The translations under genes and the position numbers were made by a program. A stretch of DNA of 64,000 nt, taken from positions 15,252,001 through 15,316,000 of the forward strand of contig NW_024704755.1 of the NCBI RefSeq assembly GCF_018977255.1, read 5' to 3'. Shown piece by piece: positions 14,791 through 41,294 of the stretch. Source of the stretch: Callorhinchus milii (taxonomy: Eukaryota). The notes under the pieces were generated by a model. The model was not told the DNA's origin and did not search any database. It saw nothing but the letters and a program-made list of their open reading frames with translations. The stretch's first letter is position 1. Each line of letters starts with the position of its first letter.

Positions 14791-15094
14791 TTTAATTCAT
14801 GGCTACTTTATTTATTCCAGGTCCAAGAGGCAGACTGTACCAATTGTTGTTTCATTAATACTGAAGAGACAGAGCGTCAACCTCGTCAATACGAGCTCAA
14901 AGTTATAACCTGGGCTTGAACCCAAACCATCTGATTCACCGTACATGTTATCAGGCATCATCCAACGGGAATTTTGATTGCACAGCATCCTCGGTCTCAA
15001 TTGTGGATAATGCTCATGGATAGTGTTCGGTAGCGGACAGCAAAAGCAAATGATCATTGTAATGGAGCCCTGGATTCAGCAATAGGCCACCTAC

Positions 15095-18531: not shown

Positions 18532-20355
18532 TTATAACACTGGATATATTTTCAACTTATCTTCAAGAATATTCAGCCTGAGGGATGCAGATCTCATGAA
18601 TGACGACATTAACATTAATATGATAACCAAGTAACAGATATGGAAGTTATTACATGAATATGCTGTTCAATATTGTTACAGATAACTGGAGAGTTGGATG
18701 AGATATTTATATAACCACTGATTATCAGAGAATCCTCCAACACAGCAAAACGTAATTCCCACATTTTGAACAATATTGTCCCGGTTACCAACAACAACAA
18801 CAACTTGGATTTATATAGTGCCCTCCATGCCGGACGGCTTGTCAGCGAACAACATAAACTTGTTTCCTCTCATTGATAATGTTAAGGCTTACGACATAAA
18901 CACAATAATTGTAAACGAAAGACAATGTCATTTTGAAACAAAGAAAGCCTTACCATTCAAGTGGTTTGGCTCTAATGCAGTCAACAATGAAGATTGTCAA
19001 CACTATCAGTAGGAAGAAACATAATACAAACCGAAAAACCATCACATCGTTGGACATTCCACGGTAACCTAGAAAACAAATATCGCACTGTAAAATGTTT
19101 ACATGAAATCTACTGAATAATTAGACTGTATTGGGAAACTGCACATGTTCTTAGATAATTGATATTGGAAGCTACAATGAGGTGGACGATTATTATAAAC
19201 TGCGCATTCAATTGATCCACAGCAAACAGTCGTGAATATCAGCAGGCAGTTTTTTTTATATAATAATATTAATAATAATCCTTGCATTTGATACAGCGCT
19301 TTTCACGTCTTCTAGACATCTCAAAACGCTTCACAGAATATGCTGTAAAGTGAATTGACTGTATATTTGTGGGAGAAACACGGCAGCCAATTACGCACAG
19401 CAGTGTCCCACAAACAGAAGTGGATTGAAAATGACCAATTTATTATTGTTTTGTTTTAGAGGGATTATTATTAAGTGTGTGAAGTTGGGAAAGTTGCGCA
19501 AGGTTTCGCCCTGCCTGCAATTGAACCCAGGTGTCTCGCTTGCAAGGCGAGTGCTCTAACCACTGAACTATAACATCACTGTGTTTAGTGAAGTTATAGA
19601 GAGACAGTTATATATTATGCGTTAGAAGTTCCCCTTAGACTGTTTGCTCAGCTTCAAATGTACCAAATATAACCGCTGTTCCAACCCGAGCCATTGAGAA
19701 GCGGATACCATCGTAATCAAAAATTATTGCATAGGACATCTGCTAAAAATCCAATTTCTGATTTCATGTGGAAATCGCATGTTGATTCCTGATTGCGTGT
19801 GGAACCCGCAGCACTATTGCACTTTAGAAGTTAGTAAATGACAAAAAATAACATTTTGTAGAAAACATATTTAGAATTTAATAACAAAACAAGAACATCC
19901 CCAGGTTTGAGGTATTCTTTGATTCAAAGACTATATATCTCCAGTTGATTGTGTTATATATAGACATATACACACATGGAGTTTACAGCGAGAAACTTGT
20001 ATGATTATCAATTGTAGCGTAAATAAATGTAAATACAATTTCCAGTAACAAGGTGTTTAACAACAAAAGACAGAAAGACAAGATGTTTCCTGCCATACAA
20101 TCCCGTGTCGGGTTTACAAACTGTGTCGCTGCGACTCCGGGAGTCCGGAGGCTGCCGTGAGATGTCAGACAGCAATAACCAGCCCCGCGCTGTCCCGGCG
20201 GTATCTCTTCTCTGTGGCTATAGAGCTCGAAACTTCATAAAGTCCCTTTGAATTCTTTCTTTATTACAATTTATCCCCGTTTTAACTTCACTGCCATCTT
20301 TATTCCAAGTGAGTTTGATATCTCCGGGTACAACCCACCCATATCACTCACAAAG
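18532..20355 (-). pseudogene. Degenerate C1 exon (~20355-20095) and frameshifted TM-like exon (18685-18532)
   Basis: Across frameshifts reads PGDIKLTWNKDG..GLYEVSSS..YCCLTSHGSLRTP. The TM-like exon start matches the fragment at ~54870. Confidence 0.62.
19260..19572 (-). mobile_element. Full-length SINE, same family
   Basis: Same head, body and tail as 27400-27737. Confidence 0.82.
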
Positions 20356-22096
20356 TGTTCACGTCTTCTATTCGGAATAATTCGTTCAGTTTAGGGCAAT
20401 GAACAGTTTGTGATCAGTGAGACATAACCTGAACATTGTGGCTAAACCTCTCAGAAGTGATGTGGAACCTTTCTCTTCACGTGGAATTTTGGAATCCACT
20501 CAAATAAAGAGCCTGAAATGTAGATTTAAGTGGGATATTTAAAAGCAAGATAGGTAATAGCTTTACGGGATTTGGAAAATGTTGGAGAGATTGTATTTGA
20601 AATTCTGCCACCATTTCAGAGCAACAACAACCTGCATTTATATAGCGTCCCTCAAGCAGGAGATTGTTCTGAAGAAGACAGGAGATTTCACTGTAATTAG
20701 AGATATAAGCAGAACCTCCCCGTTCACACCACAATTGCGCACAGCAGTGTCCTACAAACAATCGTGGATTGAGTGAGTAAATTATTATTATTATTTTTAA
20801 AAAAAAGTTTTGAAGTTATTATTAACCCTTGAAAAAAATCCATGAATCGACTAACATCTGGTTCGAATTTACCGCTCGCCCTGCCCGGGAACCGTAACCA
20901 GGTCCCCTCGCATTGCATTGGATTGTCAGTGACCTGGGATAATCACAATTAATGCATTCAGGATAGAATACAATATTAGATAAACATTCTGGTTACGGCG
21001 CTATGGAGGGATATACATGTTTGAAAGCATTGTTAACTTTAGACATTGATGTGCATAATTGATGAATACTGTTTTAATGTAAGTATTAAGCACAATAACC
21101 AGTTTAAATATTATATCTATTCTCAGTCTGTATTTTTATAGAATTCAGAATGAAAATCACAAGGTGATCAAAACTGAAAACACTTTGATATTTTGTATCT
21201 TAAGATAGGTGTAGCTAATGACAACTGATCACCTTTATTTTAATGATTGTTTTTGATTTTAATACACAGACGAGGGTGACACATGGGTTATCAAAATGGA
21301 CAATTGATATTCAGAGAAACCCCCACTAAATAAAATCCATGATTTGTAAAATAGCTCGGCTGTACCCATTGACATCTGATCACAGTGATGAAACATACTC
21401 ACTTGCTATTAATAAAAGGAGGGAACATGAGGGGATGGAAAGACATTTTGTGATCAAGTACATTGTGCTAAAATGAAGATTTTTTGAAAATAATGTGGGT
21501 TTAGGATGTTTCCACCTGGATACTAGTGGTTAGGTTTAACAAAACGTTTGGTGATTCACGTCAAATGTTTCACATTCAAACAGTATAATGCATTTTATCA
21601 CCACCCTGCACAACCCGCTCACCACCATTCACCGTACCCTTGGCTCCTATTGACTCTGGTATCGCTTCCTATCCCCTGAGGTTCCCCAGGACTACAGTCA
21701 CGTTCCATCCCTCAAGCAGTTGCTGCCGAAAAATGGATATTCCTCAGGATGTTCCTCTATCCTCGATCCTCTGCTCTTCACTATCTATATATGCTCCCAC
21801 TTGGCGACATCACTGTAGACATGTATTACATGTTCAAATGTACAACCATGAAACCCAACTCTCCCATCTTCCTCCACACTCAATCTCCACCTTCGACCCG
21901 ATTGCTGTCAGGCATCAAGTCCTTGATGAGCTCTAACTTCCTTCAGCTGAATAATAATAATAATCTTTGCATTTTATACAGCGACTTGTAGATCGGAAGC
22001 AACGATTATTATTATTATTAACTCGTTATTGTTGTCTCAAATGGCTTCAGATGATTTACTTAATGAATCAAAGCAACGAAACATCGCTATGAAAGT

Positions 22097-22182
22097 TCAA
22101 TTCACAATAGTTGACTTTTTAACTGCGAACCCACCCGCTGCACATCCAGCCCACAATAAATATCGAGTTACACTTTTACTGT
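22097..22182 (-). CDS. A2 half-TM terminal exon
   Basis: Intact acceptor gtttctccag; homologous to the A1 TM exon up to GGFA, then intron-derived sequence and TGA. Confidence 0.55.
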
Positions 22183-24562
22183 CTGGAGAAACAGTGCAAA
22201 CTGAGGTGAAACATTGTGCAGCACAACGATTTATAGTTCCAGTCATTGCAGTAGAAAATAAATGTTATGCATATCAGTTATGAATTATATTTTCCCCACA
22301 AAATACAAACCATAAATTGTAGAGCAAGACGGCGGTACCCAGTGACACCTCATCACAAGCAATGAAACGTGCTCACTTGTTATTAATAAAACGAGGGAAC
22401 ATTGTGGAATAGAATTGCATTTTGTGATCAAACGCCTTGTGTTAAAAAGGGTTTGAAAATTAGACCGCTTTATGATGCTATATTATGTTAAGTTATTATA
22501 CGTATATAATATGCGTTAGGTTTAGCAAAACCTTCACACCAAAAGATACAATATATTTTATGACCATCATCCACAACTCCCTCATCACCATTCTTAACAC
22601 ATTGGTCTCTCATCATATCAGCCATCGCTTCCTATCCCCTCAGGTTCCCCAGGACAACAGTCACACTCCATCGCTCAAGTCACAGTTTCTTGCTCCTGAA
22701 CATTGGATGTTCCTCATGGCTCTATCCTCGGTCCTCTGCTCTTCACTATCTATATGCTCCCACTTGGCGACATCACTGTAGACATGTATTGCATATTCAC
22801 ATGTACAATGATGAAACCCAACTCTCCCATCTTCCTCCACACTCGACCTCCAACTTCGACCCGATTGCTGTCAGACATCAAGTGATTGATCAGCTCTGAC
22901 TTTCTTCAGCTGAATAATAATAATAATCCATGCATTTTATACTTCGACTTATATATCGAATGCAAGGATTAATATTATTATTATCTCGTTATTGTTGTCT
23001 CAAATCGCTTCAGATGATTTACTTGATGAATCAATGCAACAAAGCATCCCTCTGAAAATTCAATTAATAACAGTTGACTTTTTAAAAATCTTTTAGCATC
23101 TTACCTTTAGATTTTGGGAAAGCGAAGGTGGCAATAGCTGAAGTCTTGAGGCTGACGTGAGACACCAGACAGGTATAAACAGACCCATTCTGGCCAGACT
23201 GTGTGACTTCAATAGAGCTCGAGGCCTTATAGAGATCCTCTGAGTTCTGCTTCTCAGTGGAACCTGACTCTTCCAGCTTTATTTCTGGTGTTGGCACAAT
23301 TTCGGTGCCATCTTTATACCAAGTGAAGGTGATTTCCTTTGGGTGAAACAAAGCAGTTTCACACACAAGAGTCTGAGGCTTAGGTGAATTCCTAGAGAAA
23401 ATCTTCAGTGGAGTTGGGGGAACTGCAGAAAAGATAATGGAGGAGAATCGTATTCATTTTGATCAATCAGCAGGAGAAACTTTATTTTAATTTGTATCCA
23501 ATACATTTCTTTGCAAACTCCTGATTCCTGAGTACAATTGGAGGTTTGTTTAGATACACAAATATCCCTCTCACAGCAGCATCGCCTTGCTCCTGCTTTA
23601 ACTACATTGTGGCTTTGTCAAGTAATATTTATTCATAATCTTTATCTTGCATATTATTACTAACTTTGATGATTGGCAGGTGCAAATGATCACTTAAAAA
23701 TGTCTGTTCAATAGGTTGAACCCGCGAACAATAGAGGATTCCTGGCAGAGGTGTGCACACTGTGTTAGTGTGGCTCAGTTGGTTGTACTTTCGGCTCTGA
23801 GATAGAATTTCGCTTCTGCTGACCGCTGCCGAACGGTGGTGATAAAATAATCATTGCATTTGAAAATAGCACCTTATCACATCTTCGAGATGTCTCAAAG
23901 CACTTTAAAAACTAGATTGTGAAAGTTATAATGTACAAACAATATAAATAACGATATAGCATTCACCGCATTTATTACTTTTCATGTAATTTCTAAATGC
24001 CAATTTCGCTCTTCATTCACACTCACCGCACACAGTTAATCGCGATCCAGATCCTGTTCCGATTATTGATCCCTGACGGACCACTACACAGCGATAGACT
24101 CCAGAGTCCTGTGAAATCACATTCAAGAACTGGAAGAAGCTGCTTCCTTTAGTTTTTACACCAAATAGTTTCCTGTTATCCTCCTTTGTATCCAAATAGC
24201 CACTCTCACCCTTCTTATTCCACTGCACCTCCACTTCTGAACCGTCTTGAGAGAAGGGGAAGATACAGCGGAAGGTAACATTTGTTCCTCTGATGGCAGC
24301 CACATGGTCGGGGATTTGAGTCACTTTCACGGAAGAATCGCCATCAACTGTCAGAAAATAAAGTCAAACACTGACTTCTCAGGTGGTGAGCCATTGAGAA
24401 AACAAATGAGTAAAAGAGGAATAAACGTAAGTATGTAAGATAAATGTCACATGGAAACAAGTTTGCAAGTATTTCATAGAATAACCGAACTATAGAATGA
24501 ACATATATACCTGTTGAAATAATGTGTAAGGCAGACAGGTACAGGAAGACAACACTCCCCAT
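22097..24562 (-). CDS. Gene A2: leader-V-C1 with truncated TM exon, predicted 258 aa, probably soluble
   Basis: Exons 24562-24511, 24347-24027, 23422-23105 are intact. The remnant exon 22182-22097 reads DSKSVTRYLLWAGCAAGGFAVKKSTIVN-stop. Confidence 0.72.
23105..23422 (-). CDS. A2 C1-set exon
   Basis: Open, 318 nt, canonical splice sites. Confidence 0.92.
24027..24347 (-). CDS. A2 V-set exon
   Basis: Both Cys, the Trp, DSGVYRC and GSGSRLTV are present; 321 nt, open. Confidence 0.92.
24511..24562 (-). CDS. A2 leader exon MGSVVFLYLSALHIIST
   Basis: 52 nt, donor ACAG|GTATAT. Confidence 0.85.
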
Positions 24563-24637
24563 GTCTGACTCTGGCTCTGATGGTCTGTCACAAGTGAACG
24601 TGGATTATTTGATGCAGAGTAGGTCGCTGTGACACTG

Positions 24638-24646
24638 ACTTCCTGT
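24638..24646 (-). promoter_or_regulatory. ETS site in the A2 promoter
   Basis: ACAGGAAGT 76 nt upstream of the ATG. Confidence 0.55.
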
Positions 24647-26679
24647 TTCTTTGGGTTCGCGAAATGTAACAGGTGTGGAGAACGCAATTTGAAATCACAG
24701 TTTGGCATTAAAATTATGAAAATAATAACCCATCCTGTTAAGAGCAGAAAAAAGCTAAGTGTATCAAAACTTTAAAAAAATGCTCTGTTTAGCATCATTA
24801 ACAGATTATGGTGCTTTGTCCAATCGTAAATGTTGGTTTGGGCATCAACTCGTGGAACCAGTTGTGTCAGAAACATTCCAATCTGACGAAAAATGTCTTC
24901 TCGTACTTTTATCCAGCTGTCCCCTTTTATAGAAATTAACCTTTCCTTCTCTTCTGGCATAGTGCTCTGCTTCAAAATCACTCCATCAAAAGGTGTACCC
25001 CAGTCCCTCTAAACTCTCCAATTATTGGCCCATCTCCAACTTGCCCTTGGTAGCCAAAGTTCTGGCCACTCAACTTTGCTTCCACCATTTTCTACACGCG
25101 GTCTAGAAACCATCCTCCTTGTCTTCTGCCAACATCTTCTGTCTCCAATGGCTTGCTGCACCCTCTCTGCATCACCATCAGTGGCTAAACCTTCAGTTCT
25201 TTGTCCACAAAATAAACACAATCATACGAGTTCACAATATATCCTGCAAAACTCTTTTGAAACATCTCAACAACATAATAAGGTGATATATCAATCAAGG
25301 ATTGTACTGTAATTATTATTAGATTCCTATACCCTATCTTTTGCAAATCCCTCCACCTCGCAATTTGTCTCACTCTTTCCCAATCCGTCTTTGTCCTGAC
25401 TCAATTCCTACCTCTTGAAACATATCTATCTCCAGCTCTCTCCCCGCTGCCTTTCCCTTACTTAGTGTCCCACCGAAATGCTTTGAAGCCCACCAAGATT
25501 ATAGGCTATGCGAAGGATGCCATGATGTAATATTAATCCTTGTGCCTTATTACGTCTTCAAAACGTCTCAAAACGCTTCACAGAATATACTGTTAAGTGA
25601 ATTGAATTGATGCTGTACAAATGTGAATTGTTGTTGTTCATAGGTAACAAATAATCTGATAAATGCAGGACATTTTCTTACACAAATCTATGCAAATTAT
25701 ATATTGTAGGGACATAATGGTGATTTGCCAGGTGGCGATGCAGACTACATCATATTTATAATATGAAAAGCTATAATCTATCCTTTTGTTTCCCTCGTTC
25801 ACTGTTGTACCTTTGTTTGACTCGCTCAGGATTTCTGTGGATTCCTGATACCTCTACTGCCCCTTCAAGCTATTTCTGCCTCAATCCCTGTACCACACTT
25901 TCTTTTTAAGTGTCTTCAAATCACATTTGAAGATTTTCCTCTTCGCCTGTGCCTATGGTCAATTTGCCAGACAGACACATTCACCCACAAAACACACACC
26001 ACTTCATGTAGTAAGAATGCATATCTGTTTTACATAAATAATGATATATTGTGTAGGTACAACCACTTTACTGCAAGATGCACAGCCTAATTGATGGCAA
26101 ATGTTAATAAGCCATGCACTATATATAATGTGAGTGAGCGAGACTCTTGTAATGGAATTATCCTTTGACATTTACAAATACAGCAGAACGATTGGTGTTT
26201 TTATACTGAGTTGTTTCATGTTAGGTGTATTTTTAGCCATTACGTGAAAAGTTCGACGTCCACGCTTCAACTTTTGCACTGTGTTGGACGAATTGCACCA
26301 CACTTTGTTGGCCTGCTTTTAAGTTAGCCTGTACCAAGTGTTGTTTCATTAGTACTGAAGAAACAATGCGTCAAACTGGTCGATATGAGCTAGTTGCTAG
26401 TTTGATTCACTGTACATGTCACCAGACATCATCTGATGGGAATTTTGATTGCACAGCATCCTCAGTCTATCTGTGGATAATGCTCATGGATAGTGTTCGG
26501 TGGTGGTCAGCAAAGCAAAATATATGTATGTTTTGGAGGATTAGACTTTAAATCCTAGAAGTTCCACACAAAATATTCAACAGGCTATGTTTCATGAATT
26601 GTGCACAACCTTGATGTTGCTATTAGTAGCGGAAATGGTCATAGTCATGGAGCCCTGGGTTGAGCAACAGGTCACTTAC

Positions 26680-27095
26680 TTGGCATTTAAGGCTGATCAA
26701 ACTTGAGCGCGTGAGAAACTGGGATTGTTCAATTGGAGAAAAGAAGAAGGGGTTATCTTCTTGGTGTTTTCCGAATACAAAGAGTATAAATAAACTGTCC
26801 TCAAATAATATGTTTGATGAAGAAAAAGAATGATGCAGAGGAAGGTGATATTTGTCTCTCTGATGGCAATCACACATTCTGGGATTAATGTTACTTTGAC
26901 CGAAAAATTACTAATAAGTATTAGAAAAACAAAGACAGATTGGTACAGTAACATAACATCCCCTCTCATGATTCTGAGCAGTTTTGACCGTGATGGTCTG
27001 TAACAAGCTGATCTGCAACAAGGCTGCACAAATGTTTTGCCGCAAAAAACGTTTCTGTGTCATTTGACTTCCTGTCTTTGAGGGTTCAGGAAGTT
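26680..27095 (-). pseudogene. Degenerate promoter + leader + V remnant
   Basis: SVKVTLIPECVIAIRETNITFLC; acceptor AG mutated to AC; premature TGA. Confidence 0.6.
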
Positions 27096-27399
27096 GTGTT
27101 TGTGTCTGAGGGCAGTTTGTAAGCACATGTGATCCTTGAAGTTATGACGAGTTTAACCCAATACAAGTTGACAGACAAATGCAGCAAAACATCGGGGGGA
27201 GTGCGGGAGAGAAATAAACATGCATTGTCCAGGATACTGTACTGACCAAGACCTAAAATCCCACCTATTATTAGAGTGAAAACACATTTTTAATGTACAT
27301 CAAGCAAAATTGTGAAAAGTTCTTAAAATTAGCCGTCATTTGTAAGTCAGTTTTACGCAGTAAACCAACAGAATAATAATAATAAATAAGCTGCCTACT

Positions 27400-27737
27400 A
27401 ATAATAATATTAATAATCCTTGCATTTGTTATAGCGCTTTTCACATCGGGAAGACGTCCCAAAGCGCTTCACAGAATATACTGTAAAGTGAATTGACTGT
27501 ATATTTGTGGGCGAACGCGCAGCCAATTGCGCACAGCAATGTCCCACAAACAGTCGTAGATTGAAAATGACCAATTTATTATTGTTTTTGGTTTTGGAGA
27601 GATTATTATTAGGCTCTGTGTGGAGTAAGGAAACTTGCCCAAGGTCTCACCCTCTGCCTGGAACTGAACTCAGGTCTCTCGCTTGCAAAGCGAGTGCTTA
27701 ACCACTGAGCTACAGGACTCCACTGAGCTACAGGACT
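27400..27737 (-). mobile_element. Full-length tRNA-derived SINE with L2-like tail (duplicate ~42015-42352)
   Basis: Head TAGCTCAGTGGTTAAGCACTCGCTTTGCAAGCGAGAGACCTGAGTTCAGTTCC (A and B boxes, TGC loop), conserved body, (TAT)n tail. Confidence 0.85.
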
Positions 27738-28904
27738 TAACTGACTAAATTCAGATAAGATGGTGTTCCTCGTTGATGAGAGCTGAGCCATGGGTTATGC
27801 ATTTGAGGCAATGAAGGACTTTAACCAACTAACACTGTGTTCTGTACCATTGAAAACGCTGTTTGGAAGCTACATATTGTTTGTTTAGTGAGGAACATCC
27901 TATCACTTAGGGATTTTCTCTTGTAGGAATAAATGGTCGTCGAATAGGAAGGATCCCTGTCACCAGACTGACCTTCCAAATCCCACTCTGAGACAATAAA
28001 AATGGTCTTAGAGACCTGATGGGATTTTTCGCCTCTGATGACCACACAAATGCAGTTTTTTTGGCAAGAGTCAGTGGGTAATGATGAAGAGAAGGCACCC
28101 TGACTTATTATCCCCTCACTATCCCAGGTGGTGAACGCAAAATGCACACTCTGGGGTCCACAAGTCTTGCATACTAGCACTTAAAGCACCTAATATTCTC
28201 AGGAACTGAGTAAACAGAACGCCTCTCGCCGAGGAGAGTGTGCATTCTATTGCAGGCAGAGATTTCCATGTGTAGGTGGAGCTCCAAGTCTAGTTTTGAT
28301 ATCCTAAGCATGCAATTGAGATTCTGCATGTGTATGATGGCTAACTGACCAAAAAAAATTGGTAATGGCAGCCAGATGAGGAGATACCTTGTGATGTCCT
28401 ATGCAGTCCAGTAGGATGTCGATACTCATTGCCAGTGCTTACAAAAGAATAAGGTCCACTTTGGGCATGATATTGGGGAAAACCAGCAACAATGGACGCA
28501 AATCCCAGAATGAAGAGACTGTGGCTTAGAAGTGAAGATGTATACCAATCATAAGGTAATTTTAAAACAATGAAACCATGAAAGGTTTGTTCCAGTAGGT
28601 GTGAATTCTCAATCTTCAGTGCCATAGAAGTAGTTTCTCTGTTTTATCTGGAGACAATATGCTCACTGTCTCTATGTACATTTGAATATAGTTGCACAGT
28701 AACAACATAATGAATGCAATTGAAAATTTAAAGGAAAGCCCAATATAATACGTTGAAAATACTGAAGGGAGATTTTTGGTATCCCAACTCCCAGTGTTCG
28801 AGTCAAAAGACCAGACAATAAAGTTTTGTGGCTAACTCAGTTTATTCAAATATAATGTTAGAATATAGAAGTTATAGTCTAGTAATAATGAAATATTAAA
28901 CAAG

Positions 28905-29679
28905 TGTAGAATGGAGAAAATAGTGACAGTCATGGGGTAGGACACATCTGTTTTTCTCTGTTTCTGAAGACAGCCTTGGGAAAGAGCAGGAGGTCACCAC
29001 TTATCAGTAAATAACAACAAAACCTACAGAGGTAACAGTCCAAGGTACAGGTCGACACAGTATCTCAGCTTAGCAATAAGTCTCTAGATTCTGACAGGGC
29101 CTACCAAGCGAGAGAAGGCAACCCTCAAGAATAACGAACTAACGAGCAAGTTGTTCAAACTGGAGGCCTTTGGTACCATCCCGGGATACTGATAAGAAAT
29201 AACCATTCACTTAAAAGGAAGACAGTAATGATCCCACATATCAAAATAACAAGCACCAGATACAGCCCTAAACTGAACAATCTCCTATCTTAGACAGGAG
29301 AAAGGGAAGACCTCGTGGAGACTCAGTCAGGCTGGCACCAAGCCAAATGATTGATTAACCTGAGTACGTGACTGTATCAGAAGTAGTTAGAGGGGCCCAA
29401 GGAAGGCCACTTGGAGAAAGGGTATAACTACTGTACCTCTAGGTGAGAACGGTTAAAAAGACAGGAAGGCCAGAGAGAGAGAGAGACCAGTGTGGAGAGG
29501 TCCCTTTCAGAATTACAGGGACGGTGATCTCTGACGTTCTGTGACTGTCTACAAAGCCTGGTGGTATAATTTGTTAGACATTTGTAGTAACTTGTCAATG
29601 CATGTTGTGTTCACTCTGATCAGAATAAACCTTGCTACACCATATTGTGATTGTCGTGTCATATTTCGAACTTTTCCCA
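28905..29679 (+). mobile_element. Possible solo LTR (duplicate 43520-44293)
   Basis: TG..CA ends, TATAA near 29425, AATAAA near 29624; absent from the A1 unit; no TSD found. Confidence 0.28.
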
Positions 29680-30079
29680 GCTCTCTCTGTTTTTGTGTCA
29701 GATTTCCAGCATCTGCAATATTTTGTGTTTTGTTTATGTTATTAACAGATGTTGAGTGATGGTTTGAGTACAAAATCGTGTTATCTGCCATTTTGATTCA
29801 TATCAACAAGATTAAAAACTTAACGTTTACAATTTTATGCAGCTCTGCCTCATAGTGCTTCATTAGATATATCATATTCTAACAAGATCTAGAGAAAATA
29901 TAAAATAATGATTTAAATGTAAAAACAACAATCGCTAGATGTGGTATTGTGCCTTTCAAGTCGGGAGGACATCTCAATCACAAGACAAATTGTAAAGGGT
30001 AGTGACTGTGTGTTTTGTCGTCGAATATGGCAGCCAATTTGCAAACAGCAATGATGCACAAACAGTCATGAAAAGAGTT

Positions 30080-30280
30080 GAGCGGATGATTGAGAGAAAG
30101 AGAAAGAGTGACTGAGGAGAAAGAAAGAGAGAGAGAGCGGAGGGAGCGGGGGAAAGAGAGATAGTGATGGAGAGAGAGTGTGCGCGAGTGATTGAGGGGA
30201 AAGAGAGAGAGTGATTTTGGAGAGAAAGAGGGGAGAGAGAGGGAAGAAAATTAGTGATTGAAAGAGAGAGAGAGAAATTG
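30080..30280. repeat. GA-rich degenerate minisatellite (duplicate ~44695-44895)
   Basis: Repeats of GAGAGA(A)AGAGAG(AT)AGTGATT; a shorter ancestral form lies at ~16075-16130. Confidence 0.75.
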
Positions 30281-31204
30281 TGTGAGCCTCCCTCGGCCAC
30301 TGCGGAGGGACCGAGGACAGACACCAAATGACGTGCTGTGCAGTTCCCTCACAGAAAGTTACCTCTTTCCCCAGTGAGAAACTCCTCTAGGTTCTTCATC
30401 CCACTTCCAATCCTACCACTTCAACCTGCTGACCAGGCTGTTCTATTTGCAGAGCTCCCCCTCCCTTTCCACCCCATCTGCCCCAACATCGCCATTTGCC
30501 GCTGCTCTCAGGATCTCCATTTTCGGAGTCCCTCCCCTCTTTCAAGGCACATCAAGAGATCTTGGATACGCTTTCGGTCATCGTTTCCTCTCCCCACCTC
30601 CTCCCTTAGTTCCCTCCTCCGGCTCAGGTGCCCAGACAGTAGTGTCGAGTGTATTCTGCAAAGCGCATTGAGACATCTTGGTGACGTGATGAGGCGCTAT
30701 ATGAAATGCAAGGATTATTATTATTATCCAGTGCTCAGCAGCCAAAAGGTTGAACCACCCAGTCTTAGATTATGATTTCTAAGTCCCGACACTGGGCTTG
30801 AATTGACAAACTTCTGACTCAGAGGTGGGAGTGCTACCAAATGAGCCAGTCTGATACACAACACATGGTTCACTTCGCATTCCTCAGCGCACTCCTCAGC
30901 GCACTCACTTGAGCTATTTGGATGTATTTTTAAAATGAATGGCTACAAATATAACAAATAGTCACTGAACGGATGCCACTTCAATTCAGATAAAAGCTTA
31001 ACTAGTAGTTTAATAAATTACATTCTCAACATCTTAACATTAGCTTTATGCAATATCATCGAATCTAACTCGAATGAATGAAATAAGTGGAGTACCAAAC
31101 ACTCTGAGTCACAATATAAATGCAAGCTGGTAAGGCACAATAGTGTTTGGTAAATATGAGTAAGGCAAACCAGAATGTATTAAAAGAGCAATATTGAACC
31201 AAAA

Positions 31205-31930
31205 TAGTGGGGTAATTTTGCCACTTTATAAGTCACTGGTGTAACCGCACTTGGAATACTGTATGCAGTTCTGGTCACCACAATATAAAAAGAGTATTGT
31301 AGCAATTGATAGGACCCATAGGAGGGCAACCAAAATAATTGAGGGGATGGAGGAACTGGACGACAATTAGATAAACTGTGTGTGTTCACGCTGGAGACGA
31401 GAGGGGGCAATATGATTACGGTCTTTAAGATTCTGAAGGGGCGAGATAATACAGACCATGATAAGCTGTTTTATCTTATAGTGAACAGTAGAACGAGAGA
31501 ACTAAGCCTGTGATTGAAGTGGGGAGGGGGTAAATTCAAAACAAGTCAATAGAAACACTACTTCATTGAGCGAGTGATAATAATAATAATAATAATCCTT
31601 GCATTTGATATAGCGCTTTTCACGTCTTCTCGATGTCTCAAAGCGCTTCACAGGATATGCTGTAAAGTGAATAACCGTATATTTGTGGGCAAAACGCGGC
31701 AGCCAATTACGTACAGCAAGTGATAAAGTGATGAGCGAGTGATAAACTTATGGAACAGGCTACTAATGGAGACAGTGGGGGCAGAAAGCATAGTTTGTTT
31801 CAAGCAGAAATTAGATAGATTTCTGCAGGAAAACACCACCTCAGGATATATGTAGTTTGTAATTTGGCACATATACCAAGGAATGCTCGGGTGGTGGAAG
31901 GAAGATATACCTTGGGCTTCTTTCGCCTTG
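31205..31930 (+). mobile_element. CR1 LINE 3' fragment interrupted by a SINE (duplicate ~45810-46540)
   Basis: LYKSLV.PHLEYCMQFWSPQYKK..RGDMITVFKILKG is the CR1 ORF2 end. Confidence 0.82.
31581..31731 (-). mobile_element. 5'-truncated SINE with 14-nt target-site duplication
   Basis: TGAGCGAGTGATAA at 31567-31580 and 31732-31745. Confidence 0.82.
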
Positions 31931-33349
31931 CAACTTCTTATCTTCTTAAATTGTTGTTGCCAATATTAAAGGTACATTGGAAAATATACCTAAAAATATT
32001 TCTCAATGCAAAGATTGGAAGCATATAATAGAAATCCCCTTGTCCTAGACATTGCATTCCCCTGAGGCATGGAAAACCGATGATTGACTAAATTACCACT
32101 TTAAACCTCATTGAACACTTTATTTAATGCAATTCAAAATGATGAAATCAAAGCTGTTATGTTCAATTATACTACACGATACAATGAACTTCATTTGTGA
32201 TTTTAGGCGAGTGATATTTGAAATATCCCACAAAAGTACAATAAGACCTTTATTTGTTGCAAAGTCATAGCTGTCATGCTTGCTGAACACCAATAGCTTT
32301 ATTTTAACATAATAAAATATGTTATTTATGAGACTTGGCGATCAAGTCTCTGTCGTTCACACACGCAATGCGAAATGTAAAAACAAAAACTTTAAATTTG
32401 GGGTAGAATGAAAACTTGACTCAGTTTTCTGGTGCCAAATTTGAAAGTTTGCCAATCTGGAAACAAATAACATAATAATCCGGGATGCTTTAAGCTAAGA
32501 GAGACAAATATTTTATTTTTAAAATGCTGAAAAATATGAAGTGTTCACAGTGAAATGAACAGTGAAATCACGCAAAGGGAATATAGCTCGAAGTGCAGGT
32601 GCTTTCTGGATCCTTTTGTGGATAAGGTTTTGTGGCTTCTGATACATAGATTTATTGAAACCATCAACATCATTTTCAGCAGCGGTCAAAAAAATCAAAA
32701 CATGACTTACTATTGATGTACAACTGACTTGATGATATGTCCCACAATTATTTAAAAAACATTATATTGGTTGCGTTTGATATATTAGTAATTGTCATTT
32801 AATTGGAGCCAAATCGACCAAGCTGAAATTGCTAATATTTAACGTGTGAAAAACAAGTAAGAGACGATATTCTAGGTATATGCCAACACCTTAATGGTAT
32901 AAATCAAAGGCACTCAAATATGTTTGATACAGTATACCAGTTCATAATTTACAATCTTCTGTTTCTTCCTATTTCCATCAGCACAATTCAATCACCTCTA
33001 ATCTTTTCTTCCTTATTTCATCTATAACAAAACAAGTAGTGCAACTGTGAATATCACCAATCCTTCGATTCTATGATAAATTGTAATAATTGCTGATTTT
33101 CACACAAACAAATTGATGCTTCAATCTGAAATGTTTACCACGAGACTGCAAACATAAAATGTTTAGTTTTATTCTAAACGGTTGTTAAACTTATTCAGAT
33201 AACACGATTTGCAGTTAGATCGCCTTTCACGTTAGAAGGACGTCTGAAAGCGCTTGGCTCTGTTTGTTGGGCACCGGAGCTGGAGACGGAAGTCAAAGTA
33301 TTCCATGTGACTGTCTAACATCATTTGTCTCTAAGACAATATCCATTTA

Positions 33350-34950
33350 TTATAACACTGGATATATTTTCAACTTATCTTCAAGAATATTCAGCCTCAG
33401 GGAAGCAGAGCTTATGAATGACGATATTAACGTTAATATGATAACCAAGTAACAGATATGGAAGCGATTGCATGAATATATTGTTCAATATTATTCCAGA
33501 CACCTGGAAATTTGGAGGAGATATTTATATAACCATTGATTACTTCGGAATCCTCCAACACAACAAAACGTAATTTCCCCCTTCTAAACCATTCTATGTC
33601 CTGGTTACCAGCGAACAACATGAACTAGTTTCCTGTTCATTGATAATTTCATGGATTACGATATCAATACAATAATTGTAAATGAAACAGTATTATTTTG
33701 AAACAAAGAATGTCTTACCGTTCAAGTGGTTTGATTCTAATGTGGTCAACAATGAAGACTGTCAACACTATCACTACCAAGAAACATAAAATAAACCGAA
33801 AAATCATCATATTGTTGAACATTGGACTGGAATCTGGAAAACAAATATCGGACTGTAAAATGTTTACGTGCAATTTACTGAATAACGACTGTATTGGGAA
33901 AATCCACACATTCTTCATCAATTGATATTGGAAGCTACAATGAGACGGACGAATATTATAAACTGTGCATTCAATTGATTGGAAAATAGCAGCGAATTGT
34001 TGTGAATGTCATCGAGCAAACACTTTATTAGTGATGTTAAAGATGTACGGTTATATATGTTATGGTATCTGTTCCCCTGAGACTGTTTGCTCAGCTTCAA
34101 ATGTACCAGATTTAACACCTGTACCGACCCGAGCCATCGAGAGGTGGACACCATCGTCATCAAACTCATCGCGTTGGACATCTACTATTGTGTGGAAAAC
34201 TCTATAAAACAACTAAACGAGTTTTATTTTAAGTGCAGTAATTGTTGTTATAAAGGAAAAGCAGCAGAAGATTGGCTCCAAAATGTCCCGAGTAAATGGA
34301 ACGGATTAATGAACGAATATTATTTGTGTTTTATTTGTGAACATTCATCAATCCAAAAGTCCAATTTCTGATTTCAAACCTAATTGCGTGTGGAACCCGC
34401 AGCACTATTGCACTTTAGAAGTTAGTAAATGACAAAAAATAACATTTTGTAGGAGACATATGTAGTATATAATAACAAAACAAGAACATCCCCAGGTTTG
34501 AGCTATTTTTCGATTCAAAGACTATATATCTATAGTTGATTGTGTTGTATATATAGATATATACACACATGGAGTTTACAGCGAGAAACTTGTATGACTA
34601 TCAATTGCAGCGTAAATAAATGTAAATACAATTCCAGTAACAAGGTGTTTAACAACAAAAGACAGAAAGACAAGATGTTTCCTGCCATACAATCCCGTGT
34701 CGGGTTTACAAACTGTGTCGCTGCGACTCCGGGAGTCCGGAGGTGCCGTGAGATGTCAGACAGCAATAACCAGCCCCGCGCTGTCCCGGCGGTATCTCTT
34801 CTCTGTGGCTACAGAGCTCGAAACTTCATAAAGTCCCTTTGAATTCTTTCTTTATTACAATTTATCCCCGTTTTAACTTCACTGCCATCTTTATTCCAAG
34901 TGAGTTTGATATCTCCGGGTACAACCCACCCATATCACTCACAATGTGTT
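33350..34950 (-). pseudogene. Degenerate C1 (~34950-34685) and TM-like exon (33503-33350)
   Basis: Paralog of the 18.5-20.4 kb remnant; a possible stalk exon lies at ~34185-34077. Confidence 0.62.
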
Positions 34951-36714
34951 CACGTCTTCGATTCGGAATAATGCTTTCAGTTTAGGGCAATGAACAGTTT
35001 GTGATCAGTGAGACATAACCTGAACATTGTGGCTAAACCTCTCAGAAGTGATGTGGAACCTTTCTCTTCACGTGGAATTTTGGAATCCACTCAAATAAAG
35101 AGCCTTAAATGTAGATTTAAGTCGGATATTTAAAAGCAAGATAGGTAATAGCTTTACGGGATTTGGAAAATGTTGGAGAGATTGTATTTGAAATTCTGCC
35201 ACCATTTCAGAGCAACAACAACCTGCATTTATATAGCGTCCCTCAAGCAGGAGATTGTTCTGAAGAAGACAGGAGATTTCACTGTAATTAGAGATATAAG
35301 CAGAACCTCCCCGTTCACACCACAATTGCGCACAGCAGTGTCCTACAAACAATCGTGGATTGAGTGAGTAAATTATTATTATTATTTTTTAAAAAATGTT
35401 TTGAAGTTATTATTAACCCTTGAAAAACAATCCATGAATCGACTAACATCTGGTTCCTATTTACCGCTCAGTAAACAGATGCCAAGCGTTTCGCCCTGCC
35501 CGGGAACCGTAACCAGGTCCCCTCGCATTGCATTGGATTGTCAGTGACCTGGGATAATCACAATTAATGCATTCAGGATAGAATACAATATTAGATAAAC
35601 ATTCTGGTTACGGCGCTATGGAGGGATATACATGTTTGAAAGCATTGTTAACTTTAGACATTGATGTGCATAATTGATGAATACTGTTTTAATGTAAGTA
35701 TTAAGCACAATAACCAGTTTAAATATTATATCTATTCTCAGTCTGTATTTTTATAGAATTCAGAATGAAAATCACAAGGTGATCAAAACTGAAAACACTT
35801 TGATATTTTGTATCTTAAGATAGGTGTAGCTAATGACAACTGATCACCTTTATTTTAATGATTGTTTTTGATTTTAATACACAGACGAGGGTGACACATG
35901 GGTTATCAAAATGGACAATTGATATTCAGAGAAACCCCCACTAAATAAAATCCATGATTTGTAAAATAGCTCGGCTGTACCCATTGACATCTGATCACAG
36001 TGATGAAACATACTCACTTGCTATTAATAAAAGGAGGGAACATGAGGGGATGGAAAGACATTTTGTGATCAAGTACATTGTGCTAAAATGAAGATTTTTT
36101 GAAAATAATGTGGGTTTAGGATGTTTCCACCTGGATACTAGTGGTTAGGTTTAACAAAACGTTTGGTGATTCACGTCAAATGTTTCACATTCAAACAGTA
36201 TAATGCATTTTATCACCACCCTGCACAACCCGCTCACCACCATTCACCGTACCCTTGGCTCCTATTGACTCTGGTATCGCTTCCTATCCCCTGAGGTTCC
36301 CCAGGACTACAGTCACGTTCCATCCCTCAAGTCACAGTTGCTGCCGAAAAATGGATATTCCTCAGGATGTTCCTCTATCCTCGATCCTCTGCTCTTCACT
36401 ATCTATATATGCTCCCACTTGGCGACATCGCTGTAGACATGTATTACATGTTCAAATGTACAACCATGAAACCCAACTCTCCCATCTTCCTCCACACTCA
36501 ATCTCCACCTTCGACCCGATTGCTGTCAGGCATCAAGTCCTTGATGAGCTCTAACTTCCTTCAGCTGAATAATAATAATAATCTTTGCATTTTATACAGC
36601 GACTTGTAGATCGGAAGCAACGATTATTATTATTATTAACTCGTTATTGTTGTCTCAAATGGCTTCAGATGATTTACTTAATGAATCAAAGCAACGAAAC
36701 ATCGCTATGAAAGT

Positions 36715-36800
36715 TCAATTCACAATAGTTGACTTTTTAACTGCGAACCCACCCGCTGCACATCCAGCCCACAATAAATATCGAGTTACATTTTTACTGT
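36715..36800 (-). CDS. A3 half-TM terminal exon
   Basis: DSKNVTRYLLWAGCAAGGFAVKKSTIVN-stop; same breakpoint as A2. Confidence 0.55.
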
Positions 36801-39177
36801 CTGGAGAAACAGTGCAAACTGAGGTGAAACATTGTGCAGCACAACGATTTATAGTTCCAGTCATTGCAGTAGAAAATAAATGTTATGCATATCAGTTATG
36901 AATTATATTTTCCCCACAAAATACAAACCATAAATTGTAAAGCAAGACGGCGGTACCCAGTGACACCTCATCACAAGCAATGAAACGTGCTCACTTGTTA
37001 TTAATAAAACGAGGGAACATTGTGGAATAGAATTGCATTTTGTGATCAAACGCCTTGTGTTAAAAAGGGTTTGAAAATTAGACCGCTTTATGATGCTATA
37101 TTATGTTAAGTTATTATACGTATATAATATGCGTTAGGTTTAGCAAAACCTTCACACCAAAAGATACAATGTATTTTATGACCATCATCCACAACTCCCT
37201 CACCACCATTCTCAACACATTGGTCTCCCATCATATCAGCCATCGCTTCCTATCCCCTCAGGTTCCCCAGGACAACAGTCACACTCCATCCCTCAAGCCA
37301 CAGGTAGGTGCTGCTGAACATTGGATGTTCCTCCTGGCTCTATCCTCGGTCCTCTGCTCTTCACTATCTATCCCACTTGGCGACATCACTGTAGACATGT
37401 ATTGCATGTTCACATGTACAGTGATGAAACCCAACTCTCCCATCTTCCTCCACACTCGACCTCCAACTTCGACCCGATTGCTGTCAGACATCAAGTGATG
37501 AGATCCGACGTTCTTCCGCTGAACATTAATAATAATCCATGCATTTTATACTGCGACTGATATATCGAATGCAAGGATTAATATTATTATTATTATCACA
37601 TAATTGTTGTCTCAAATTGCTTCAGACAATTTACTTAATGAATCAATGCAACTGAACATCCCTATGAAAATTCAATTAACAACAGTTGACTTTTTAATAA
37701 TCTTTTAGCATCTTACCTGCTTTAGATTTTGGGAAAGCGAAGGTGGCAATAGCTGAAGTCTTGAGGCTGATGTGAGACACCAGACAGGTATAAACAGATC
37801 CATTCTGGCCAGACTGTGTGACTTTGATAGAGCTCGAGGCCTTATAGAGATCCTCTGAGTTCTGCTTCTCAGTGGAACCTGACTCTTCCAGCTTTATTTC
37901 TGGTGTTGGCACAATTTCGGTGCCATCTTTATACCAAGTGAAGGTGATTTCCTTTGGGTGAAACAAAGCAGTTTCACACACAAGAGTCTGAGGCTTAGGT
38001 GAATTCCTAGAGAAAATCTTCAGTGGAGTTGGGGGAACTGCAGAAAAGATAATGGAGGAGAATCGTATTCATTTTGATCAATCAGCAGGAGAAACTTTAT
38101 TTTAATTTGTATCCAATACATTTCTTTGCAAACTCCTGATTCCTGAGTACAATTGGAGGTTTGTTTAGATACACAAATATCCCTCTCACAGCAGCATCGC
38201 CTTGCTCCTGCTTTAACTACATTGTGGCTTTGTCAAGTAATATTTATTCATAATCTTTATCTTGCATATTATTACTAACTTTGATGATTGGCAGGTGCAA
38301 ATGATCACTTAAAAATGTCTGTTCAATAGGTTGAACCCGCGAACAATAGAGGATTCCTGGCAGAGGTGTGCACACTGTGTTAGTGTGGCTCAGTTGGTTG
38401 TACTTTCGGCTCTGAGATAGAATTTCGCTTCTGCTGACCGCTGCCGAACGGTGGTGATAAAATAATCATTGCATTTGAAAATAGCACCTTATCACATCTT
38501 CGAGATGTCTCAAAGCACTTTAAAAACTAGATTGTGAAAGTTATAATGTACAAACAATATAAATAACGATATAGCATTCACCGCATTTATTACTTTTCAT
38601 GTAATTTCTAAATGCCAATTTCGCTCTTCATTCACACTCACCGCACACAGTTAATCGCGATCCAGATCCTGTTCCGATTATTGATCCCTGACGGACCACT
38701 ACACAGCGATAGACTCCAGAGTCCTGTGAAATCACATTCAAGAACTGGAAGAAGCTGCTTCCTTTAGTTTTTACACCAAATAGTTTCCTGTTATCCTCCT
38801 TTGTATCCAAATAGCCACTCTCACCCTTCTTATTCCACTGCACCTCCACTTCTGAACCGTCTTGAGAGAAGGGGAAGATACAGCGGAAGGTAACATTTGT
38901 TCCTCTGATGGCAGCCACATGGTCGGGGATTTGAGTCACTTTCACGGAAGAATCGCCATCAACTGTCAGAAAATAAAGTCAAACACTGACTTCTCAGGTG
39001 GTGAGCCATTGAGAAAACAAATGAGTAAAAGAGGAATAAACGTAAGTATGTAAGATAAATGTCACATGGAAACAAGTTTGCAAGTATTTCATAGAATAAC
39101 CGAACTATAGAATGAACATATATACCTGTTGAAATAATGTGTAAGGCAGACAGGTACAGGAAGACAACACTCCCCAT
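36715..39177 (-). CDS. Gene A3: leader-V-C1 with truncated TM exon, predicted 259 aa, probably soluble
   Basis: Exons 39177-39126, 38962-38642, 38037-37717, 36800-36715. V protein is identical to A2; C1 differs (IKV, SHI, extra Ala). Confidence 0.72.
37717..38037 (-). CDS. A3 C1-set exon
   Basis: Open, 321 nt, ends PKSKA-G, donor GTAAGA. Confidence 0.92.
38642..38962 (-). CDS. A3 V-set exon
   Basis: Same translation as the A2 V exon; canonical splice sites. Confidence 0.92.
39126..39177 (-). CDS. A3 leader exon
   Basis: Same sequence as the A2 leader. Confidence 0.85.
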
Positions 39178-39252
39178 GTCTGACTCTGGCTCTGATGGTC
39201 TGTCACAAGTGAACGTGGATTATTTGATGCAGAGTAGGTCGCTGTGACACTG

Positions 39253-39261
39253 ACTTCCTGT
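39253..39261 (-). promoter_or_regulatory. ETS site in the A3 promoter
   Basis: ACAGGAAGT 76 nt upstream of the ATG. Confidence 0.55.
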
Positions 39262-41294
39262 TTCTTTGGGTTCGCGAAATGTAACAGGTGTGGAGAACGC
39301 AATTTGAAATCACAGTTTGGCATTAAAATTATGAAAATAATAACCCATCCTGTTAAGAGCAGAAAAAAGCTAAGTGTATCAAAACTTTAAAAAAATGCTC
39401 TGTTTAGCATCATTAACAGATTATGGTGCTTTGTCCAATCGTAAATGTTGGTTTGGGCATCAACTCGTGGAACCAGTTGTGTCAGAAACATTCCAATCTG
39501 ACGAAAAATGTCTTCTCGTACTTTTATCCAGCTGTCCCCTTTTATAGAAATTAACCTTTCCTTCTCTTCTGGCATAGTGCTCTGCTTCAAAATCACTCCA
39601 TCAAAAGGTGTACCCCAGTCCCTCTAAACTCTCCAATTATTGGCCCATCTCCAACTTGCCCTTGGTAGCCAAAGTTCTGGCCACTCAACTTTGCTTCCAC
39701 CATTTTCTACACGCGGTCTAGAAACCATCCTCCTTGTCTTCTGCCAACATCTTCTGTCTCCAATGGCTTGCTGCACCCTCTCTGCATCACCATCAGTGGC
39801 TAAACCTTCAGTTCTTTGTCCACAAAATAAACACAATCATACGAGTTCACAATATATCCTGCAAAACTCTTTTGAAACATCTCAACAACATAATAAGGTG
39901 ATATATCAATCAAGGATTGTACTGTAATTATTATTAGATTCCTATACCCTATCTTTTGCAAATCCCTCCACCTCGCAATTTGTCTCACTCTTTCCCAATC
40001 CGTCTTTGTCCTGACTCAATTCCTACCTCTTGAAACATATCTATCTCCAGCTCTCTCCCCGCTGCCTTTCCCTTACTTAGTGTCCCACCGAAATGCTTTG
40101 AAGCCCACCAAGATTATAGGCTATGCGAAGGATGCCATGATGTAATATTAATCCTTGTGCCTTATTACGTCTTCAAAACGTCTCAAAACGCTTCACAGAA
40201 TATACTGTTAAGTGAATTGAATTGATGCTGTACAAATGTGAATTGTTGTTGTTCATAGGTAACAAATAATCTGATAAATGCAGGACATTTTCTTACACAA
40301 ATCTATGCAAATTATATATTGTAGGGACATAATGGTGATTTGCCAGGTGGCGATGCAGACTACATCATATTTATAATATGAAAAGCTATAATCTATCCTT
40401 TTGTTTCCCTCGTTCACTGTTGTACCTTTGTTTGACTCGCTCAGGATTTCTGTGGATTCCTGATACCTCTACTGCCCCTTCAAGCTATTTCTGCCTCAAT
40501 CCCTGTACCACACTTTCTTTTTAAGTGTCTTCAAATCACATTTGAAGATTTTCCTCTTCGCCTGTGCCTATGGTCAATTTGCCAGACAGACACATTCACC
40601 CACAAAACACACACCACTTCATGTAGTAAGAATGCATATCTGTTTTACATAAATAATGATATATTGTGTAGGTACAACCACTTTACTGCAAGATGCACAG
40701 CCTAATTGATGGCAAATGTTAATAAGCCATGCACTCTATATAATGTGAGTGAGCGAGACTCTTGTAATGGAATTATCCTTTGACATTTACAAATACAGCA
40801 GAACGATTGGTGTTTTTATACTGAGTTGTTTCATGTTAGGTGTATTTTTAGCCATTACGTGAAAAGTTCGACGCCCACGCTTCAACTTTTGCACTGTGTT
40901 GGACGAATTGCGCCACACTTTGTTGGCCTGCTTTTAAGTTAGCCTGTACCAAGTGTTGTTTCATTAGTACTGAAGAAACAATGCGTCAAACTGGTCGATA
41001 TGAGCTAGTTGCTAGTTTGATTCACTGTACATGTCACCAGACATCATCTGATGGGAATTTTGATTGCACAGCATCCTCAGTCTATCTGTGGATAATGCTC
41101 ATGGATAGTGTTCGGTGGTGGTCAGCAAAGCAAAATATATGTATGTTTTGGAGGATTAGACTTTAAATCCTAGAAGTTCCACACAAAATATTCAACAGGC
41201 TATGTTTCATGAATTGTGCACAACCTTGATGTTGCTATTAGTAGCGGAAATGGTCATAGTCATGGAGCCCTGGGTTGAGCAACAGGTCACTTAC

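Follow-up and report, generated by a model that had tools for sequence, protein, structure and literature searches.

Two very young tandem copies of a 3'-truncated SIRPalpha-like V-C1 receptor gene in Callorhinchus milii: probably neutral relics, possibly decoys

Introduction

The cytoplasmic tail of SIRPalpha contains four tyrosines that form immunoreceptor tyrosine-based inhibition motifs (ITIMs) and serve as docking sites for SHP-1/2. Its relatives include SIRPbeta, SIRPgamma and a predicted soluble SIRPdelta, and members of the family share ectodomains while differing in anchoring and signalling. The domains d2 and d3 of SIRPalpha are of the C1-set type (PMC2785349), and soluble SIRP variants made up of D1 only have been discussed for mammals (PMC12975943). 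The same pattern of shared ectodomains and differing anchoring and signalling is found in a cluster of immunoglobulin (Ig)-superfamily, SIRPalpha-like V-C1 receptor genes that occupies the minus strand of a 64,000-nucleotide stretch of the Callorhinchus milii genome (scaffold MU249845.1 of assembly GCA_018977255.1, positions 15,252,001-15,316,000; hereafter the window). Over its first 34,562 bases, the window is identical to this scaffold. Here, we describe two genes of this cluster, A2 and A3, in which the transmembrane (TM) exon is truncated at the same position, and compare them with the full-length genes A1, within the window, and A0, to the left of it.

Soluble paralogues of inhibitory receptors that are encoded by genes of their own include LAIR-2 (paired with LAIR-1) and LILRA3 (paired with LILRB1/2), for both of which secretion, competition for ligand, and conservation or polymorphism have been documented. 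A2 and A3 resemble these proteins in that the duplicate of an ITIM receptor retains the ligand-binding ectodomain, lacks the tail and probably has no functional TM segment; in contrast to them, A2 and A3 are just ~0.1-0.3% diverged from their relatives. They likewise resemble the unprocessed truncated pseudogenes of the KIR, LILR and NITR clusters, where recombination-prone tandem repeats and conversion tracts occur together with V/C1 fragments and with copies that bear stops or deletions, and, like such pseudogenes, A2 and A3 have lost exons essential to the function of the parent. They differ from them in that no disabling mutation is present in the remaining exons, although nothing can be concluded from this in copies so young.

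Results and discussion

A truncated 3' end common to A2 and A3

We hold with moderate confidence that A2 and A3 are very young tandem copies of a 3'-truncated cartilaginous-fish SIRPalpha-like V-C1 receptor gene, and that each would be a neutral relic or the source of an incidental product. The full-length gene type of the cluster, represented by A1 and A0, is composed of leader, V, C1 and TM exons followed by three ITIM-bearing cytoplasmic exons (Table 1). In A2, positions 22121-22291, which hold the TM acceptor and the 5' part of the TM exon, align to A1 7889-8059 at 84%, as do positions 36739-36909 of A3. As an earlier reading of the same DNA (the original prediction) had noticed, homology to the TM exon of A1 then ends in both genes at the same point, after ...GGTGGGTTCGCA (GGFA), placing the junction at 22123/22122 in A2 and at 36741/36740 in A3. 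The adjoining 1,041 bases of A2 (21082-22122) align instead to the post-C1 intron of A1 (8077-9066; 77.6%, E=3e-163), as do positions 35697-36740 of A3, and this intron-derived alignment begins at TTAAAAAGTCAAC, 21 nucleotides past the C1 donor. By these alignments, both the TM-exon and the intron matches are far beyond chance.

In the ancestor of A2 and A3, codon 20 of the TM exon was thereby joined to the post-C1 intron, at position +22, of a different paralogue belonging to the A4 type (A4 is a further member of the cluster; Table 1). The reading frame of A2 and A3 continues across the junction as ...GGFAVKKSTIVN-stop, and the truncated exon as a whole translates as D-SKSVTRYLLWAGCAAGGFAVKKSTIVN-stop, with the stop codon at 22097-22099; the A3 exon is the same except for a change of S to N. 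Absent from both genes are the hydrophobic core of the TM segment, the GKRC stop-transfer motif, the three cytoplasmic ITIM exons and the native 3' end. The motifs of the four-tyrosine tail (VAYVTL, TVYAQT, LTYAAL and SEYSEV) occur in A1 and A0 only, and A2, A3 and A4 are without a tail. A tblastn search with the tails of the family revealed no further TM or cytoplasmic exon of the family downstream of A2, A3 or A4 in the window, and a scan for a phase-1 acceptor followed by a hydrophobic open reading frame (ORF), from the A2 stop to A1, returned just three chance ORFs, none with similarity to the family.

In A2 and A3, the exons that remain (leader, V, C1 and truncated TM) contain no stops or frameshifts and have lost no splice sites. 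As predicted, the acceptor and the upstream frames are intact, and the four exons join via canonical GT/AG sites in phase 1 to encode 258 amino acids in A2 and 259 in A3. Distinct from the fusion is a deletion of 235 bp that both genes have in their C1-TM intron.

Table 1. Features of the receptor cluster, in window coordinates except where another sequence is named
Feature	Position	Strand	Remarks
A1, full-length gene	5272-10975	-	seven exons, 374 amino acids, canonical splice sites
A1 leader exon	10924-10975	-	
A1 V exon	10447-10767	-	
A1 C1 exon	9086-9403	-	
A1 complete TM exon	7837-7950	-	YLLWAGCAAGGFAFLALVIIFGKRC
A1 cytoplasmic exons	7082-7125, 6173-6283, 5272-5436	-	
A2 leader exon	24511-24562	-	MGSVVFLYLSALHIIST; donor CAG/GTATAT
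A2 V-set exon	24027-24347	-	GTGSGSRLTV; nucleotide-identical to A3 and to A0 (L001)
A2 C1-set exon	23105-23422	-	VPPTPLKIFSRNSPKPQ...FPKSK; donor AAG/GTAAGA
A2 C1-TM intron (intA)	22183-23104	-	235-bp deletion at ~22292/22293 relative to A1, A0, A4 and intB
A2 truncated TM exon, including stop	22097-22182	-	(D)SKSVTRYLLWAGCAAGGFA/VKKSTIVN-stop; intact acceptor TTTCTCCAG
A2 intB	21082-22122	-	post-C1 intron copy from intron position +22, A4-type lineage
C1-like degenerate pseudo-exon downstream of A2	20118-20328	-	frameshifts and a stop
A3 leader exon	39126-39177	-	
A3 V-set exon	38642-38962	-	
A3 C1-set exon	37717-38037	-	one additional Ala codon ahead of the donor, shared with A0
A3 truncated TM exon, including stop	36715-36800	-	
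A3 intB	35697-36740	-	99.9% identical to A2 intB
C1-like degenerate pseudo-exon downstream of A3	34748-34919	-	
A4	51404-52873	-	leader, V and C1 intact; TM and cytoplasmic exons absent
Intron-like stretch, then C1 pseudo-exon, behind A4	49353-49525 (pseudo-exon)	-	
Tandem array	19788-49611		2.04 units, period 14.6 kb (19788-35005 = 34379-49611, 99.06%)
Gene-conversion tract, A1 to A2	22553-23210	-	~650 bp; 3' half of C1 and first ~550 bp of the intron; >30 A2-unique sites carry the A1 base
A0	L001 10001-15546 = scaffold 15,230,083-15,235,628		leader located 16.4 kb to the left of the first window base
Fusion junction specific to the truncated copies			GGGTTCGCAGTTAAAAAGTCAACTATTGTGAATTGA
Predicted A2 splice junction, C1 to truncated TM exon			TCTAAAG/ACAGTAAAAGTGTAACTCG
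Predicted A3 splice junction, C1 to truncated TM exon			TCTAAAGCAG/ACAGTAAAAATGTAACTCG
A0 counterpart of the C1-TM splice junction			.../ACAGTAAAAATGTAATCCG

How the truncation may have arisen

The sequence behind the junction (intB) had been taken for a copy of the post-C1 intron, fused to the TM exon by unequal crossover. The fusion to intron sequence and the resulting VKKSTIVN-stop ending stand, but the intron is not the gene's own. Identity between intB and the C1-TM intron of A2 and A3 is only 79-80%, and in a maximum-likelihood tree intB groups with the A4 intron (100/100 support), to which it is 81% identical, compared with 79-82% to the others. Because it joins the A4 intron in the tree at just 81% identity, intB is assigned to a different, old paralogue lineage of the A4 type. 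The order seen in A2 and A3, with intB followed by a frameshifted C1 pseudo-exon, recurs after A4 (49525-49353). At the junction itself, the sequence reads GCA-G-TTAAAAAG, where the TM exon has GCA-TTTCTG and the intron GATTTT-TAAAAAG, such that microhomology does not exceed 2-3 nucleotides. We reject unequal crossover within one gene on account of the ~20% divergence of intB from the gene's own intron and the lack of homology at the junction.

We infer that the fusion was non-homologous and is best explained as a deletion of 12-14 kb. Such an interstitial deletion would have begun midway through the TM exon of a full-length A gene and ended in the adjacent A4-type gene, at position +22 of its post-C1 intron. 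Lost with it would have been the 3' half of the TM exon, the ITIM exons, a B-type gene and, from the A4-type gene, leader, V and C1 (~12-14 kb in total). The present layout (truncated A2, intB, C1 pseudo-exon, unit, A1) mirrors one that crosses the left edge of the window (A1, B-type pseudogene psiB', A4', intron, C1 pseudo-exon, unit, A0), and the latter order supplies the exact substrate for the proposed deletion. Following truncation, the 14.6-kb unit was duplicated in tandem, probably through recombination between copies of a 627-bp segment. A segmental duplication, also recent and at least 27 kb long, has rendered the entire 5' part (C1 and everything upstream of it, including sequence ahead of the gene) 99.7% identical to A0.

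Age of the copies

The 627-bp segment is present three times in the array (19788-20414, 34379-35005 and 48984-49611), which is the pattern that a duplication through recombination between older repeats would leave. A three-way alignment of A0, A2 and A3 spanning 12.3 kb contains 3 sites unique to A3, 34 unique to A0 and 45 unique to A2. Most of the last (38 of 45) fall in 22297-23999, and ~32 of these match A1. Here, a gene-conversion tract (Table 1) accounts for the closer similarity of A2 than of A3 to A1, with A2 being 93.5% identical to A1 and A3 only 90%. Outside the tract, A2 differs from A3 by ~0.1% and A0 from A3 by ~0.3%. The prediction of one truncation event followed by duplication is thus upheld by the 14.6-kb tandem arrangement, with 99.06% identity overall and ~99.9% outside the single tract.

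A divergence of ~0.1% outside the conversion tract is within the allelic range, and A2 and A3 could in principle represent two haplotypes of one truncated gene that were assembled in tandem. This is extremely unlikely, given that the window is gap-free, with no runs of N anywhere, and that the 627-bp segment occurs threefold, as a real recombination-mediated duplication predicts; the truncation itself would be unaffected either way.

The 5' and 3' parts of the truncated genes have different histories. The segmental duplication (at least 27 kb) is evident from the match of window positions 64000-36915 to a stretch that runs from 6166 leftwards past the edge into L001, and its boundary lies inside the C1-TM intron. 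At ~22450, identity to A0 falls from 99.7% to 94% (158/168) and remains at that level across the TM piece of 171 bp. Since this piece is just 94% identical to A0, the truncated 3' end predates the event that homogenised the 5' part, and we reject a truncation later than the A0/A3 duplication, for which 99.7% would be expected.

In the coding exons, very little change has accumulated. The V exons of A0, A2 and A3 show no differences in 327 nucleotides, the C1 exons of A2 and A3 differ from that of A0 by 2-4 nucleotides, mostly via the conversion tract, and overall each exon carries 0-4 substitutions relative to the intact parent. Because the copies have almost no substitutions, dN/dS has no power for V and C1 (A0, A2 and A3 are identical in V, and comparisons among paralogues gave 0.5-1.7). 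The intact frames noted in the original prediction might be taken for a sign of function. With A2 and A3 ~0.1% apart, however, both the identical truncation and the intact frames are expected under neutrality, and an identical lesion combined with intact frames in 99.9%-alike copies carries zero functional information. There is no sign of selection on A2 and A3, which are too young to show any. Their likeliest status is that of neutral by-products of birth-and-death turnover, either nascent pseudogenes or sources of incidental soluble products.

The predicted product

Fourteen hydrophobic residues (YLLWAGCAAGGFAV) are left in the remnant of the TM segment, and these had been considered probably too few to anchor the protein. 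Using the Kyte-Doolittle and Hessa scales and scoring the best 19-residue window, we obtained a mean Kyte-Doolittle value of 1.14 for the remnant compared to 2.28 for A1, and a summed Hessa value of +7.0 compared to -1.4 kcal/mol. On these values, the remnant is unlikely to form a stable TM anchor, in agreement with that expectation. Because its hydrophobicity seems insufficient for TM anchoring, any product of A2 or A3 would probably be a V-C1 ectodomain without a TM helix, and secreted. Alternatively, the short hydrophobic C-terminus could act as a glycosylphosphatidylinositol (GPI)-attachment signal or a weak tether, in which case A2 and A3 would be surface receptors without a signalling tail. 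Shortening of its TM segment and tail can convert a TM protein to GPI anchoring, as in FcgammaRIIIB relative to FcgammaRIIIA, and close to the C-terminus of A2 and A3 a moderately hydrophobic stretch of 13-14 residues follows the small residues D-S-K-S. That stretch is, however, followed by seven hydrophilic residues (KKSTIVN), which is atypical of GPI signals, and we give GPI anchoring or tethering hardly any credence.

The promoter-proximal 135 bp, the exons and the splice sites of A2 and A3 equal those of A0, and A2 and A3 are for this reason probably transcribed wherever A0 is. Transcription would yield a V-C1 ectodomain of 258 or 259 amino acids, probably secreted, on condition that the transcripts end at a cryptic 3' site. 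Canonical poly(A) signals (AATAAA/ATTAAA) are absent from the 833 nucleotides behind the stop; the first cluster of such signals is located 833-857 nucleotides past it (21239-21263 in A2, 35854-35878 in A3), within sequence that is ordinary intron in A1 and A0. For want of a nearby signal, the terminal position of the truncated exon, and with it the escape from nonsense-mediated decay expected in the original prediction, is putative. Neither the VKKSTIVN tail nor the junction of C1 with the truncated TM exon was matched in a collection of 5.8 billion protein clusters, a weak negative given that transcript-derived C. milii proteins of this family seem to be lacking there. An AlphaFold2 model of A2, built from a 9-sequence alignment, had a mean predicted local distance difference test (pLDDT) score of 57.7, too low for a meaningful fold search.

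The NCBI model P0001 (489 amino acids, 5272-24562) omits the truncated TM exon, which is likewise a weak negative. P0001 is a chimera in which the leader, V and C1 of A2 are combined with parts of the V and C1 of A1 and with the A1 cytoplasmic exons; both TM exons are dropped, and the model relies on cryptic sites that lie within the V and C1 exons of A1. The model for A0 (P0002, 268 amino acids) skips an intact C1 exon. The NCBI annotation of the receptor cluster, being chimeric or exon-skipping in these models, is unreliable. If P0001 were taken at face value, the exons of A2 and A3 might be used only in read-through or chimeric transcripts that run from C1 into the next A gene, with the truncated TM exon being skipped or serving as a poison exon, and the missing poly(A) signal close behind the stop would be consistent with such transcripts. 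The cryptic sites and the loss of both TM exons nevertheless give P0001 the appearance of a modelling artefact, and the TM acceptor of A2 and A3 matches that of A0 at 14 of 15 intron positions and at the start of the exon, making it equally strong. We consider exclusive use in chimeric transcripts very unlikely.

Decoy or relic

The original prediction had named A1 as the receptor for which A2 and A3 would be decoys. The V domain of A2 and A3 is only 82.6% identical to that of A1 in amino acid sequence and 100% identical to that of A0, the full-length ITIM gene outside the window, with which the V exon agrees in every nucleotide, so that any decoy would mimic A0 and not A1. An unpaired Cys is located at the V-C1 hinge (LTVC) of A2, A3, A0 and A4 (24027-24035, 38642-38650 and 52338-52346 for the three window genes), where A1 has Arg (LTVR, 10447-10455), and could permit disulfide-linked dimers.

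A decoy role is possible for A2 and A3. They may be functional secreted V-C1 proteins that compete for the ligand of A0, in the manner of LAIR-1/LAIR-2 or LILRB/LILRA3. The identity of the V domain with that of an ITIM-bearing receptor argues for this, as do the intact signal peptide, V, C1 and TM acceptor, the weak hydrophobicity of the remnant, the position of the stop in the last recognisable exon, the recurrence of TM-less V-C1 models in C. milii and five shark genera, and the fact that the truncated 3' end predates the last duplications. On the other side are the lack of any sign of selection (with almost no substitutions available to show it), the 833 nucleotides without a canonical poly(A) signal, the failure to find a protein or model with the tail in large collections together with the skipping of the exon by Gnomon, the presence of a full-length rather than truncated gene at the matching position of the neighbouring higher-order repeat, and the abundance of decaying fragments in the cluster around A2 and A3. 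On balance, we regard functional competition for the ligand as rather unlikely. More specifically, ITIM-bearing A0 and two secreted copies of its V-C1 ectodomain, A2 and A3, could constitute a LAIR-1/LAIR-2-style paired system for the same ligand, with the copy number of the decoy being tuned by tandem duplication; we regard this as doubtful. Were it true, the setting of the inhibitory/decoy pair would be a holocephalan (chimaera), one of the earliest-branching living jawed vertebrates. If expressed, A2 and A3 would represent an early-vertebrate soluble partner of an inhibitory Ig-type receptor, born by a single deletion, and would aid the study of how paired and decoy receptors originate.

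Several considerations weigh against our preferred account of A2 and A3 as neutral by-products. Judging from its ~6% divergence from the A0 TM region, the truncated 3' end may have long persisted beside an intact 5' part. The intact exons, splice sites and proximal promoter, all as in a presumably functional gene, make expression of a secreted product quite possible. Finally, annotated V-C1 models without a TM segment occur in C. milii, Heterodontus, Chiloscyllium, Stegostoma, Scyliorhinus and Cetorhinus, alongside members with ITIMs or with short tails. Their recurrence hints that the family may truly include soluble members, although some of these models may be annotation artefacts.

The gene family

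Each member of the cluster is built on a plan in which a leader exon is followed by a V-set exon that carries a germline J-like motif and then by a C1-set exon. Pfam recognises the V domain as V-set (E=2.3e-8) and Ig_3 (E=4e-14) and the C1 domain as C1-set (E=2.5e-13), with a single C1 per gene; the J-like motif G-x-G-x-x-L-x-V is present in the V exon as GTGSGSRLTV. The closest solved structures by sequence in the PDB are IgM constant domains, UrIg2, B7-H6 and SIRPalpha, with the SIRPalpha entry 2wng matching at E=2.4e-7. The full-length genes share with SIRPalpha a layout in which the V-set domain, with its J-like motif, is N-terminal and is followed by a C1-set type of domain, one TM segment and a four-tyrosine tail. 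From SIRPalpha, the shark genes differ in carrying one C1 domain rather than two. A second C1 domain survives only as a frameshifted pseudo-exon beside A2, A3 and A4. The local models are labelled by NCBI as 'tyrosine-protein phosphatase non-receptor type substrate 1-like', that is, SIRPalpha-like. The cluster is likened to the SIRPs by sequence and automatic names, and the latter are inconsistent for this family (SIRPalpha-like, tapasin-related, NCR3LG1-like and MHC class II beta-like). An exhaustive HMMER search of protein clusters yielded 61 representative clusters at E<1e-30, and all 12 matches whose origin was checked came from cartilaginous fishes. A literature search for shark or chimaera SIRP-like receptors found nothing specific, and no activating member with a charged TM segment was seen in the window. 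A0, with complete TM and ITIM exons, is located in L001 (window coordinates -31917 to -6372).

The surrounding locus

The locus mainly illustrates the fast turnover of a shark SIRP-like cluster, through non-homologous deletion, tandem and 58-kb segmental duplications, and conversion tracts. Its neighbourhood is visibly decaying, with V fragments, a B-type pseudogene with stops, C1 pseudo-exons and the loss of V from A4'. A higher-order segmental duplication (99.6-99.9%) runs off both ends of the window, at 1-6166 and 57826-64000, and continues leftward in L002 (34563-39291) and L001 (1-12263). Its left copy has a 1.9-kb deletion (equivalent to 55279-53331), and most of the V exon, corresponding to 52603-52183, is missing from A4', the A4-type gene to the left of the window.

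The leader, V and C1 of A4 are open at 15-20% divergence from the other copies. Its C1 exon has a 3-codon deletion and a change of His to Arg in the C-x-V-x-H motif, and P0003, an Ensembl model of the A4 type, has an end that comes from read-through into the intron (..AGKVLKDF). Between the receptor genes, long ORF-like stretches (1601-2297, 13041-14280 and 59440-60120) look like decayed remnants of repeats or retroelements; Pfam gave no match for the two that were searched (1965-2297 and 13861-14280). Short degenerate V-exon fragments (SVKVTLIPECVIAIRETNITFLC...) at 15240-15318, 26823-26903 and 41438-41518 are located upstream of A1, A2 and A3, colinear in each unit. A more divergent V-C1 gene of the B type is a pseudogene at 57047-57847, with two in-frame stops in its V exon and a C1 exon that still scores as Pfam C1-set (E=1.7e-5), and an intact B-type gene with a TM exon of its own is present at L001 21139-24927.

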